A program made the translations under genes and the position numbers. The notes under the pieces were generated by a model. It saw only the letters and a list, made by a program, of their open reading frames with translations. It did not search any database and was not told the origin of the DNA. Positions 11,629-16,627 of a stretch of 64,000 nucleotides of DNA are shown here, in pieces. This DNA comes from Caecitellus pseudoparvulus (taxonomy: Eukaryota; Protista; Bigyra: Bicosoecida): the NCBI GenBank assembly GCA_965644315.1, contig CBFFRQ010000068.1, positions 496,001 through 560,000 of the forward strand, written 5' to 3'. Positions within the stretch are counted from its first letter, which is position 1. Every line of letters starts with the position of its first letter.

Positions 11629-13252
11629 TTGGGCGTGGCTTCCTCCAGCAACTCCGCGACGCGGTCCTCTCCCAAAGTGGCGAAGTCTTGTTGCAGGACG
11701 GGGGGCATGCCCTGCATGGCGCGCTTCAAATTCAGAGTGTGCCACGTGCTGCGGAAGTGCGCTCTGTACTCCGCCCGCTCCTCGAACACCGCCCCGCCAC
11801 ACTTGCGGCAGGCAAGTGCCCCCGACCCGCCACTCACGACAGGTTTCGGGGCGGTGCTGGTGGGCGGCATGGCGACGCGCCCACCCTCTGCCTGCACCGC
11901 TTCGGCGAGGCCAGCAGGGGAGCTGGACGGCACCGCTGTCGCATGGGCAGCGGCAGCAGTGGAGGACCCCAGGCTCATGATGTCCCTGTCCCCCAACGCA
12001 GTCGTGGCGGTGGCGTCGGCACCAGGCGTGCCGACGGACATCGCCAGCACATCAATGGAGGCCGGGAACCAGGCAGCCTCGGCAGATGCAGAGACGGGCC
12101 CAGGGCTGCTGCTGGGCGTGGAGGCCTCCGCCGCCGCTGCAGCGGCCGCAGCCTTGCGTCGCTGCTTCTTGCTGCGTTTCTTGCCGCCTGAAGCGCCGGC
12201 GTCAGCCGACGCGGTCTGGGGCAGTGCGGGCTCCTCGCCAGCCATGATGGCCGACAAGGCTGCGGCGTCCAGAGCACTGCACCAAGTGCGCAGGCGGCGC
12301 AGGAGCTCAGGTTCCGCGGAGAACTCCACTGCCCGGCCAGGGCGGCGGGCGGCGGGCGCATCTGCCTCCGCCACGGCGTGGGCGGCGAGGGCAGCGGACC
12401 ACGGCAGACCAGAGGTTTTGTCGACCTGCACCTCCACATCGCGCAAGACAACGGCGTGGTCTGGCAGAAGGCCCAGAAAGGCTGGCCCGGCAGGGGGTGG
12501 CAGCACAGCCTTGAAGTGCATGTGCGCGCGCTCGATGGGGAGCAGGGGCTTCAGCGTGGGGATGGCCTCCAGCGCCTGGCGCTTCGTGGACACCTTCGGG
12601 TTCACGGAGAAGTGCGCCTCGCGTAAGGCTGCCTCGATCACGGAGACCTGGCGCAAGGGGGAGGGGGGGCTGCGTGTGAGCTGATGTAACACTTGGGCGC
12701 GCTTCGCCGCCGTCGGACGCACTGGGTGAGGCATGGAGGTGGTCGGGTTCACACACTTGTCTGCAATGATCGTGGCCACTTCGCGGAACATGCTGCGGCG
12801 GGGGGGGGGGCGGGGTGTGCCGGGCGGCGAGGGGAGCGCTGCCGCGTCGGCGCAGGAACGGACCTGTCCAGCTGCACCTGGCGCTCCTTGTCAGACACCT
12901 GCAGCTCCCCCTTCTCCAGCACGATTTTGCAGCACTCCAAATGGTCATCTGTGCCAAAGGCCGCCTTCAGGTCCTTGGCTTTCGCAGTGATGCCCTGGAA
13001 GCGGCGGGGGGCGCTGGCGTGGTGAGGCTAAGGAGGGATCAAAAACCGCAGGACACCCCTCACCTTGGAAGCGTTGGAGAACACGTATGGCGCCTGGAGG
13101 ACCTCGTCGATGTCCGTCTCCACCTTGTTGCGCCAGTTCACGACTTTGTTCCGGTATGCTGTCACCTCGAAGCGCTTGCCACCCTTCTTGTACTTGACGA
13201 AAGCAACATTCGTGAACCGCACCTGGCCCACAGGCTGGAAGATGCCTGCCAT
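11625..13252 (-). CDS. SBDS: Ribosome maturation factor SBDS/Sdo1 with a C-terminal C2H2 zinc finger; introns 12995-13063, 12793-12863, 12648-12722
   Basis: [64 protein letters not shown]; C-terminal CRKC...[13 protein letters not shown]. Confidence 0.95.
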
Positions 13253-13461
13253 GGTGCACCAAGGGAGCGTCACGTTTCAAAACCCAAGTTGCAAAAGATT
13301 CATGTGAAGCAAGTAGGGTGATTATTGTATGGATCCACGTCAAGTGCCACCCAGTGGGCCGCTTTGCTGAGAGGGTAAACTCACACGCGCTACTCTTCGC
13401 CCCGGCTGTCTGCAGCCCTGTTCCGAAGTTGCCGCTCACTTGGCATCGCGCTGGATCCAGG

Positions 13462-14917
13462 ATGAAACTGCTTGGATGTGCCCTCATCGCCATTGCCGCC
13501 TCAGTGTGCCTTGCAGCCGTCCCAGGTGAGGCTCTGCGCCGGCTGGCACAGACGCCGCAACTCCAGCGAAACGCCACTCGGTCGGCCCACTTGTTCCTCT
13601 GCAGCACCCAAGTACCAGGGCGTATGGAGCACCAGCGCGCTGCGCAGCGTGTACGAGGAAGACTTGTCGTCTGCAGGCAGCAGTGGTGGGTGCATTCCCC
13701 CCCCCACCCGACTGCACGTGAACCTGACACAGCTCGTCGTGAACTGGAAGGCGCTGCAAGCCCACGCACTCCCTGAGACGACCGTGGCGCCCACCCTCAA
13801 GGCTGACGCATACGGGCACGGCGCAGTGCCCGTCGCCTTGGCCCTGCAGCGGGCTGGCGCACGCGTGTTCATGGTGGCAGCGCTGCGGGAAGCTGTGCAG
13901 CTCAGGCGCGCAGGCATCCAAGGCCGCATCGTGGTCATGAGCGGCACGCCGCCCCGTGCAGTGCCCGTGGCGGCCGACCTGGGCCTGGAGCTGACCGTAT
14001 TTGACCAACACTCCGTGCACGCCTATGCAGCCGCCCTGGCTGCCGCTGGCTCCCCCGCCCTGGCAGTGCACGTGAAGGTGGACTCAGGCATGGGGCGCAT
14101 TGGCGTGCTGCCGACGGAGGCCGCGGCTGTGGCAAGTGCCCTGCAGAAACACAGCAGCGCCCTGCACCTGCGCGGGGTGTACACGCACTACAGCAAGGCC
14201 GACGAGGATGAGGTGTGGACGCGGGCACAGCACGCGACCTTCTCTGCTGCCGTCACGGCTGCCTTTGGCGCAGACACGCCAGTGCACACGTGCAACAGCG
14301 CCGCCCTTTTGCTAGACCCGAGCCTGTGCGGCTCCCTTGCGCGCACAGGCATCGCCTTGTACGGAGGGGTGGCATCCGCGGTGACCGCCCCCCTGCCGGG
14401 CATGGGGTATGCGCTGACCTGGAGCACGTGGGTGGCTCAGGTCAAGACACTGCCTGCAGGCCATGCAGTGGGGTATGGCAACACATACCACACGTCGGAG
14501 GCGGAGACTGTCGTGGTGCTGCCTGTGGGCTACTCCAACGGCCTGCGGCGGGGGCCCACGAACCAGGGGCATGTGTTGCTGCACGGCACGAAATGCCCAA
14601 TTCGAGGCCGGGTGTCCATGGAGAAACTTGTGGTGGGCGTGCAGCACCTGGTGGACGCAGGCGTGCAGGTGGCAGTGGGAGACACAGCGCTGCTGCTGGG
14701 TGCACAGGAAGCTCGGGCTGGCCAAGGCGCCGTGGGCGCCTCTGGAGCCGAGGCCCCTGCCGGCGTGGTGTCCATCACGCCAGGGGATGCAGCAGCTGCC
14801 ATCGGCACCATTGACTACGAGGTGTTCACAGGCTTGCTGCCTGCCACGCCCCGATGGGGAGGTGACGCCTGCGGTGTGCAGTACCTGTGGCCACAGGGGC
14901 AGACGCAGACACTGTGA
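13462..14917 (+). CDS. alr: Alanine racemase (PLP fold type III) with an N-terminal signal peptide; intron 13526-13604
   Basis: LKADAYGHG (PLP Lys), VHVKVDSGMGRIG, GVYTHYSKAD, CNSA, ARTGIALYG, VGYGNTY (catalytic Tyr), GRVSME, GTIDYEV. Exon 1 encodes MKLLGCALIAIAASVCLAAVP and splices in frame. Confidence 0.93.
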
Positions 14918-14942: not shown

Positions 14943-16627
14943 CTACTGGGACGGCAGAGAGCTGAGCAAGCGAGCTGAGTTGCCTTTGACGCCGCCCCCG
15001 AAGGCGGCCCCGGCGGGCGCGAACACGGGCAAGGTGCCGTCCCCGATGCCTTCCTCTGCAGCGGCCAGGCGCTGCTGGTACTCGTACGCCGACATGCCTG
15101 TCGGGCGCACCTCCCGCATGGCAGCTGCGAAGTCCGCTGTCACGACGGGGCGGGTGGAGACGCCTGCAGAGGCACTCGCGGCCACCTCACCCAGGCGGCT
15201 GTCCCGCCACGCCAGTAGGTCCTCGTGGCACAGAGGCTGCCCTGGCTGCGCACCTTGCCCCCCCTCGTCCGTCACCTGTGACGCGGGGGCGTGGTGGCCC
15301 CCCTGCTGCCCAGCCTCCCACGCCTCCCGCGCCGCCAGGCGGCGGGCGTACTCCTCCTCCACCGCCTCCCGCGCGGCCCGCACAGCCATGCGCTCGGCGG
15401 TGCTGGCCTCCCGGATGGGGCGCAGGGCGGCAGCTCGGCACAACTCCTTGAGGTCCGAGCCAGAGTACTGCGCAGTGGCGTCTGCCACCGCCTGCAGGTC
15501 ACACTGCATCGGCCCCGAGCCCTCGGCAGCGACGTTCTCGCCCTTGAGCAGGACACGCAAGATCTTCAGGCGGCCAGCGGCAGAGGGCAGGCCCACCTCG
15601 ATTTGCCGCGGCATGCGCCGCAGGATGGCCTGATCCAGGGCGTGGGGGCGGTTGGTGGCGCCGATGACCAGCACCCAGTTCTGCGGCACGTCCTGGGAGC
15701 CCTGTGCCTGCCCGGCGCCCTCCACGGCAGCAGAGCGCGTGGAGGCGGTGGCGATGCCGTCCCACATGGCCATGAACAGTGTCTTGACTTTGTCGGTGAC
15801 GGCGGGGTCCATGCTACCCTCCGTGCGCCGGGACAAGAAGCCGTCCATCTCGTCCACGAACACGATGCAGGGCGAGAGCTTGTGGGCGAGGGAGAAGATG
15901 GCCTGCACCATCTTCTCGCTGTCCCCTACGTACTTGCTCATGATGGTGGCTAGGTTGACGTTGATGAAGGAGGCGCCACACTCTTTGGCAATGGCTTTGG
16001 CCAGCAGGGTCTTGCCTGTGCCAGGCGGCCCGTACAGCAGAACGCCGGTGGGGCGATTGGCCAGTCGGCTCTGCTTGAACAGATGCGGCTTGGTAAGAGG
16101 CAAGGTCACCATCATTTCCACCTGCTCAATCTGTGCGGCGGGCGGGCGGCGGCAGGGGCCAGGGCGGCGTGCAAAGACAGGCCGTGGCGTTACGCTTCGC
16201 AACGCGTGAGCCTCACCACTTCCTCCAACCCGCCGATGCTGTGGAAGCCTTCCTCAATCTGGTATGGAAGGATGATGTCCCGACGCAGTGCACGCTCATA
16301 TTCGTCCAGCTCCAAGCTGTGCAGGCGCCGCGTGCGGCTGTTGCCTGATTCTTGCGCCAGGGGCGCCGTCTGCTCCTTGGCTGTGTTGCTGGGGCTGGGT
16401 TTCAAGCCGTAGTACGCGGCAGCAGCCAGCGCCGCCACGCCTGCGACGATGGCGCCGCCCACCAGCGGGTTTTCCTTTGCCCAGGCAACAGTGGCCGATG
16501 CAGTGTCCACTGCCCACTGGGCGCTTGCATCCATGCCTGTCGGGCCTTTGGGCGGGCGTGCTTGCCGCACAGGGCCGGCCTGCCGTGTGCTGCCGCTGCT
16601 CATGCCGAGGTCCAGAGGCGCAGGCAT
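14943..16627 (-). CDS. ATAD1: AAA+ membrane-protein dislocase ATAD1/Msp1; intron 16131-16216; start codon uncertain
   Basis: N-terminal TM anchor, ELDEYERAL, FHSIGGLEE, GVLLYGPPGTGKT, IVFVDEMD, FMAMWDG, GATNRP...AILRRMP, YSGSDLKELC. Confidence 0.9.

Follow-up and report, generated by a model that had tools for sequence, protein, structure and literature searches.

In textbooks, alanine racemase is an enzyme of the bacterial cytoplasm that serves wall synthesis. The bacterial enzymes (Alr, TIGR00492) are pyridoxal 5'-phosphate (PLP)-dependent proteins of fold-type III with two domains and a catalytic pair of Lys and Tyr. Chimeras in which a MurF-like N-terminal domain precedes Alr were characterised recently, mainly from Bacteroidota and Chloroflexota (PMC13726279). 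BsrV from Vibrio cholerae and Alr from Pseudomonas putida KT2440 are PLP racemases of the same fold that are exported by an N-terminal signal; both are periplasmic, and a catabolic role was assigned to the KT2440 enzyme (PMC7890096, PMC6034422). Bacterial-type racemases also occur in eukaryotic nuclear genomes, examples being Alr1 of S. pombe, the fungal cyclosporin and HC-toxin racemases, and a racemase of Adineta vaga. One survey, which covered D-amino-acid enzymes that eukaryotes had acquired horizontally, described 14 transfer events (Ala_racemase_N family); SignalP was applied to all candidates, and a signal peptide was detected in one DAO group only (PMC5169069). The DNA analysed here, referred to as the window, is a stretch of 64,000 nucleotides from Caecitellus pseudoparvulus (assembly GCA_965644315.1, contig CBFFRQ010000068.1, positions 496,001 to 560,000, forward strand). 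From its sequence an original prediction had proposed a racemase gene of bacterial type whose first exon encodes only a secretory signal peptide. We consider it very probable, from sequence comparison, that the gene has this structure and that its product enters the secretory route. Our literature search, the coverage of which was incomplete, revealed no alanine racemase of a eukaryote that is exported, phagosomal or secreted, and the supposed novelty of the gene stood to that extent. The other eukaryotic Alr are not reported with a signal peptide, whereas here a leader is kept in three species and the enzyme is the sole Alr of the genome.

The racemase is encoded by the second exon, and its residues were numbered on this exon, counted from position 13607. 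Both Pfam domains of alanine racemases were detected, PF01168 (Ala_racemase_N) with 187.8 bits (3e-55, cut-off 24.1) and PF00842 (Ala_racemase_C) with 98.4 bits (3e-28, cut-off 25). The equivalog model TIGR00492 scored 229.4 bits against a cut-off of 168 and identified the protein as an alanine racemase (EC 5.1.1.1). The NCBIfam model NF008897 (MurF-Alr) was also matched, and the protein atlas returned generic bacterial Alr clusters only. Comparison with the PDB gave full-length alignments with solved alanine racemases, the best match being 3e5p at 1e-51. The two catalytic residues claimed for the protein were intact (Table 1) and align with their counterparts in the solved structures. In the alignment of 63 homologues Arg164, His194, Arg246, Gly248 and Met338 were invariant and Lys157 nearly so; residues of the PLP site and the entry-way were assigned via the Geobacillus numbering. 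The AlphaFold2 (AF2) model had a mean predicted local distance difference test score (pLDDT) of 89, with about 95 or more in the two core domains. The fold, the Lys/Tyr pair and the PLP-site residues are those of bacterial Alr, especially of the Alr part of the MurF-Alr proteins of Chloroflexota and Bacteroidota, and the sequence gives no reason to doubt that the protein would be an active alanine racemase.

The prediction had further named the broad-spectrum racemases of the Bsr type as exported relatives, and this part proved overstated. The Bsr subfamily model NF009879 scored 115 bits against a cut-off of 434, too low for membership, and PDB matches on the Bsr side were weaker (4beu, which is BsrV, 3e-27; 4dyj, 5e-30) than the match to 3e5p. 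Both comparisons place the protein with ordinary Alr, on another branch of the family than Bsr, and its leader is of the eukaryotic endoplasmic reticulum (ER) type, whereas the Bsr leaders are bacterial Sec signals. The sequence offers no pointer that would suggest a broad specificity. Two substrate-site motifs had been described as deviant. In the first, GYSNG, the Asn alone sets the eukaryotic clade apart, the relatives having GYSDG or GYADG. The second, GRVSME, proved to be inherited from the donor group, as G-R-V-S-M-E-K is common to the window protein and its nearest bacterial relatives, the Anaerolineae-type Alr (41-45% identity).

The window is GC-rich (57-72%) and its genes are densely packed. 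When its sequence was re-read, the predicted coordinates of both exons and the intron were all correct (Table 1). Exon 1 encodes Met, Lys at position 2, about 17 uncharged hydrophobic residues and then small residues (C-L-A / A-V-P); its final base begins an Ala codon that the intron splits. The 3' part of the intron is pyrimidine-rich and ends with CAG at 13604. Exon 2 continues as a frame of 437 codons, in frame up to the TGA at 14915-14917. As the intron length of 79 nt is not a multiple of three, the frame of exon 1 is broken in an unspliced message, in which a stop follows at 13776 after about 100 unrelated residues. In the enzyme frame no ATG was present between 13472 and the catalytic Lys, and the first Met of exon 2 lies downstream of Lys65. 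Since no other ATG of the window can start the full enzyme, a complete enzyme translated from an ATG requires 13462 and splicing. This ATG has an A at -3, and the spacer 13253-13461 contains no in-frame ATG upstream of it. The divergent gene on the minus strand encodes SBDS and has its ATG at 13252; as this leaves only 209 bp, another exon upstream would not fit, and the spacer presumably serves as a promoter shared by both genes. The two SBDS introns, fixed by homology, measure 69 and about 66 nt, and the GTGAGG donor recurs in one of them. The racemase intron is credible because its donor, acceptor and size match these neighbouring introns.

The signal peptide was called with a heuristic (basic start, hydrophobic core of 10 to about 17 residues, small residues at -3/-1) that was used on exon 1 by itself and on the orthologues, the exons always being analysed separately. 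Exon 1 showed all these properties, and its hydrophobic core has the length of a signal peptide and not that of a transmembrane segment. The window has 1,337 ATG-led 19-mers across its six frames. Only one passed the leader thresholds, which were chosen post hoc so that all four orthologous N-termini pass, and this one was the N-terminus of the racemase. By this sequence measure the resemblance of exon 1 to a signal peptide is beyond what chance would be expected to give.

Leaders were also present in the orthologues. The racemase on the metagenomic contig L001 is 63% identical to the window protein and lies in a syntenic gene order (TACO1, SBDS, racemase, SLU7, DHHC). Its leader, consisting of ATG, 19 further codons and one extra base before a GTAAG donor, differs from that of the window gene and is nevertheless a typical signal peptide. 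The L001 intron has 73 nt, ends with CAG, is in phase 1 and is placed as in the window gene. A third lineage, with about 50% identity, was found on Tara and Logan contigs (L002/L192 and P0123). Its leader is intronless, in frame at the first ATG, and has a cleavage motif of the A-S-A type. This lineage is regarded as eukaryotic because the longer contig, L192, carries protein kinase, PH-domain and TBCC-like genes; the neighbours on L002 lacked Pfam domains and were not matched in the genome of the window. The dedicated first exon of the original prediction was thus recovered in two species (window and L001) and not in the third. The leader itself, which the open reading frame track indeed overlooks, is kept in all three. 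The third-lineage proteins (L002:638-2134 and P0123) additionally contain an insert of about 60 residues, including two additional cysteines, between the barrel halves, and one of 7 residues after the first helices; neither insert occurs in the other orthologues.

The same build was encountered elsewhere in the genome. Two small GH24 lysozyme genes in tandem (L193:633-1277 and L193:1650-2282; G000:C40, about 330132-331781) each begin with a 15-codon exon for a signal peptide and nothing else, followed by a GT-AG intron and an exon for a cysteine-rich lysozyme. These genes show that a leader exon is normal for secreted enzymes of this genome. Their domain family, too, is mainly found in phages and bacteria, although they encode hydrolases and the racemase is a PLP isomerase.

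A near-identical strain (L097) retains both splice sites and the leader character. Its exon 1 differs from that of the window at three sites (Ala to Val, Leu to Phe, and Leu to Arg at a tolerant position), and as all three alter the amino acid, they provide no evidence of purifying selection. A comparison of L097:1400-1680 with window 13380-13660 further showed one difference in the intron and none in the aligned flanks (upstream about 80 nt, in exon 2 about 55 nt). These strain differences, together with an in-frame ATG inside the L001 intron, would suit an upstream exon that is unused or a chance open frame, with a cytosolic racemase starting elsewhere. We consider this very unlikely, since the window offers no alternative start for the full enzyme, the splice sites are conserved and typical, and in three species the first ATG opens a leader-like N-terminus, for which the background rate is about 0.1%. 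The conserved features described below (sequon, cysteines and C-terminal extension) would also be sensible only outside the cytosol.

Features specific to the eukaryotic clade (the window species, L001 and the L002/P0123 lineage) were identified by comparison with the bacterial relatives and with the sister sequence P0004, and are listed in Table 1. The NLT sequon and the cysteines flanking the fold (Cys29, Cys422) were present as predicted. At the site of the sequon the bacterial relatives mostly have Asp for Asn, and none of those shown has a sequon. The C-terminal extension follows the pattern C-x-V-x(1-2)-Y-x-W-P-x-G in the clade. The C-terminus of the window protein has no KDEL-type ending, no PTS1-type ending and no hydrophobic tail. 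Only about 30 residues of exon 2 precede the fold, and what follows the leader is a short, acidic and variable stretch. The window gene differs from bacterial Alr in its signal peptide and intron, in the sequon, in four additional conserved cysteines and in the C-terminal extension. Conserved cysteines in even number, combined with a conserved sequon, are what would be expected of a protein folding in the ER lumen, and the terminal cysteines, Cys29 and Cys422, may form a disulfide.

Table 1. Coordinates of the racemase gene and of features of its product (positions in the window)
Feature	Position	Strand	Remarks
Spacer between SBDS start and racemase ATG, head-to-head	13253..13461	.	209 bp
Exon 1	13462..13525	+	21 codons including the ATG, plus 1 base; predicted signal peptide
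Intron	13526..13604	+	79 nt, GT-AG, phase 1; donor GTGAGG, acceptor CAG
Exon 2	13605..14917	+	Short acidic linker, complete alanine racemase (PLP barrel in the N-terminal half, beta domain in the C-terminal half), C-terminal extension, stop
Cys29	13691..13693	+	Four to five residues before first strand; all eukaryotic orthologues, none of the bacterial relatives
N-L-T sequon	13721..13729	+	N-[LM]-[TS] in all eukaryotic orthologues
Lys65, catalytic, PLP-binding	13799..13801	+	KADAYGHG motif; invariant in 63 sequences
Cys229 (H-T-C-N-S) and Cys241 (L-C-G)	14291..14329	+	Eukaryotic clade; not in aligned bacterial relatives
Tyr290, second catalytic base	14474..14476	+	GYGNTY motif; invariant in 63 sequences
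Ala/Gly-rich insertion, about 18 residues	14711..14764	+	Shared only by the L001 orthologue; low-confidence model
C-terminal extension, about 20 residues	14855..14914	+	Eukaryotic clade only; pLDDT about 51
Cys422, within the C-terminal extension	14870..14872	+	Eukaryotic clade

The origin of the gene was examined by database searches and a phylogenetic tree. Among 5.8 billion clustered proteins, close relatives were confined to variants of the strain itself, the two orthologous lineages and the short contig of P0004; the next matches were Chloroflexota sequences with 41-43% identity. When 1.84 billion representatives were searched exhaustively with HMMER, only P0002 and P0003 were close, and the scan of metagenomes together with this search gave no close relatives beyond the L001 and L002 lineages. 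Many of the next-best HMMER matches were 820-890 residues long with the racemase at the C-terminal end, that is, MurF-Alr fusions. The window protein has no MurF-like domain, although its Alr domain is closest to these chimeras. The best match from a named genome was a metagenome-assembled genome of Anaerolineaceae with 42% identity.

In a maximum-likelihood tree of 81 sequences the three signal-bearing lineages were joined with an SH-aLRT support of 97, and with P0004 included the support was 100. This clade was placed within a group (98) that contains named Anaerolineae sequences. P0004 (L098:19-1191), located on a contig of 1.2 kb, is the nearest sister of the signal-bearing clade and shares 46% identity. 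It lacks the signal peptide, the sequon, the extra cysteines and the C-terminal extension, and its N-terminus is rich in Ser, Ala and Arg. The horizontal acquisition from bacteria that had been predicted agrees with the nesting of the clade among Chloroflexota sequences in both searches and tree. We read these relationships as one old transfer from a bacterium to a eukaryote, followed by gain of the leader; a transfer that predates the divergence of the three present-day species would explain them best. Chloroflexota, and within them Anaerolineae, are the nearest relatives.

The genome was searched in six frames in an assembly of 30.6 Mb and 215 contigs (G000). Cytosolic HSP90 had its best named matches in oomycetes and diatoms (73-75%), none of them close, as judged from best hits and not from a tree. 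No light-harvesting proteins were found in the genome search, and by these sequences the host, a small marine protist, looks like a non-photosynthetic stramenopile. The domain Mur_ligase_M, which folylpolyglutamate synthase usually matches, had no match in the genome; this reflects either a gap in the sensitivity of the six-frame search or real absence. A genuine Ddl was also not found in the genome, the sole matches being ATP-grasp parts of large carboxylase-like frames. Because neither a Mur ligase nor a genuine Ddl was found, the racemase would not feed peptidoglycan synthesis, and in this the host differs from those of bacterial Alr. A green alga with plastid peptidoglycan was also considered as the host and was ruled out, there being no light-harvesting genes, Mur ligase or true Ddl.

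The same searches bear on the possibility that the leader begins a bipartite targeting signal for a relic plastid, or marks a membrane anchor, so that the enzyme would serve an organelle. The host groups with the stramenopiles, and some colourless stramenopiles keep plastids. We nevertheless regard an organellar role as extremely improbable: no light-harvesting or peptidoglycan synthesis genes were found, the stretch after the leader has no aromatic residue directly behind the cleavage site, where one would be expected, and no transit-peptide character, and a core of signal-peptide length argues against an anchor.

Ala_racemase_C had a single match in the genome, namely in the gene described here, which is accordingly the only true Alr. 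Four weak matches to Ala_racemase_N (40-53 bits) on contigs C42, C53, C38 and C40 (L006-L009) had no C-terminal domain and are probably other fold-type III PLP enzymes.

Genes that could act on bacterial walls were present. GH24 lysozyme gave eight matches, six of which lie inside open frames of 4,700-5,974 residues. The frame of 5,974 residues (G000:C29:48449-59548; L106, L110, L111) contains two GH24 matches and two matches to VanY-type D,D-carboxypeptidases, and C57 and C31 likewise carry giant frames, of 4,800 and 4,700 residues, with GH24 pairs. AnmK was found with 234 bits as an intronless gene of bacterial type with no obvious leader (L013:1387-2766; G000:C55:234202-235371), and may represent a cytosolic step of wall-sugar salvage in an organism without peptidoglycan synthesis genes. 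The best match of the DAO family was weak and resembled ThiO/glycine oxidase. A bacterivorous setting, as in the original prediction, fits the presence of wall-degrading genes and the failure to find light-harvesting genes.

On this basis the following course is proposed. A bacterial Alr would have been acquired, with loss of any N-terminal partner domain, and would have gained an ER signal peptide, in two species on its own first exon. One N-glycosylation sequon, four cysteines and the C-terminal extension would have been added in the eukaryote. The protein would be translated into the ER, where the leader would be cut near the exon junction, and as a soluble PLP enzyme it would follow the secretory or endolysosomal route, most likely to the food vacuole or the immediate surroundings. 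There it would interconvert the two enantiomers of alanine. The lysozyme and VanY-like modules of the host would free D-alanine from the stem peptides and teichoic acids of the prey, and the racemase would turn it into usable L-alanine. Cleavage, glycosylation, disulfides, compartment, direction of flux and physiological role are inferred. On the whole we favour, with moderate confidence, a racemase that is exported or vacuolar and recovers D-alanine from the walls of the prey; the salvage role as such is proposed tentatively, at somewhat below an even chance.

An exported enzyme could also work in the opposite direction. It would then release D-alanine, or with a broad specificity other D-amino acids, into the vacuole or medium and so interfere with the wall remodelling or signalling of bacteria, a part that the periplasmic Bsr racemases play among bacteria, or it would provide D-alanine for a secreted or surface product of the ER or Golgi. 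All evidence for export applies to this equally, and the reaction is reversible. The pH of seawater would suit an enzyme with an alkaline optimum, and the clade-specific change from Asp to Asn lies in the entry-way motif G-Y-S-N-G. The assignment to ordinary Alr and not to Bsr speaks against it, as do the dilution that a soluble enzyme would undergo when secreted into seawater, the failure to find a ligase using D-alanine in the genome, and the degradative genomic context of GH24, VanY and AnmK. Production of D-amino acids is therefore possible and less supported than salvage, and we consider it unlikely.

Salvage of D-alanine from prey also has several points against it. The gene model was derived from comparison of sequences, and cleavage near the exon junction is a guess. 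The strain differences in exon 1, none of which is silent, fit a fast-evolving leader or, equally, weak constraint. In the AF2 model the pLDDT drops to 47-66 N-terminally and to about 51 C-terminally, exactly where the putative disulfide partners are located. Alanine racemases prefer alkaline pH and need PLP, which makes a poor fit to an acidic lysosome; for this reason a neutral stage of the vacuole, the ER/Golgi or seawater would be favoured as the site of action. Because the MurQ-like match was weak (55 bits against a cut-off of 302), a full route of wall-sugar salvage is unsupported. Finally, the bacterivorous habit was itself deduced from gene content.

An AAA ATPase gene (ATAD1-like; 14943-16202, minus strand) follows the racemase directly in tail-to-tail orientation. 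Its counterpart in L001 (L001:17199-17392) lies beyond SLU7 and DHHC, which indicates a local rearrangement within an otherwise kept gene order.

D-Alanine serves as a bacterial biomarker in dissolved organic matter. If the proposed role is correct, a predator would have re-tooled a biosynthetic enzyme of the type present in its prey for digestion. A eukaryotic sink or source would then be added to marine D-alanine. The gene would also illustrate cleanly how a leader exon, a glycosylation site and cysteines can be gained after a transfer, and as a single soluble enzyme with a simple assay it would be a tractable test case. In a wider and more doubtful reading, marine bacterivorous stramenopiles may have assembled a route of wall digestion from acquired bacterial genes, so that grazers, besides bacteria, would reshape the D/L-alanine pool of seawater. 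One step of this route may be an exported amino-acid racemase, which would be the first known from a eukaryote and would turn the D-alanine of bacterial walls into L-alanine in the vacuole or at the cell surface.

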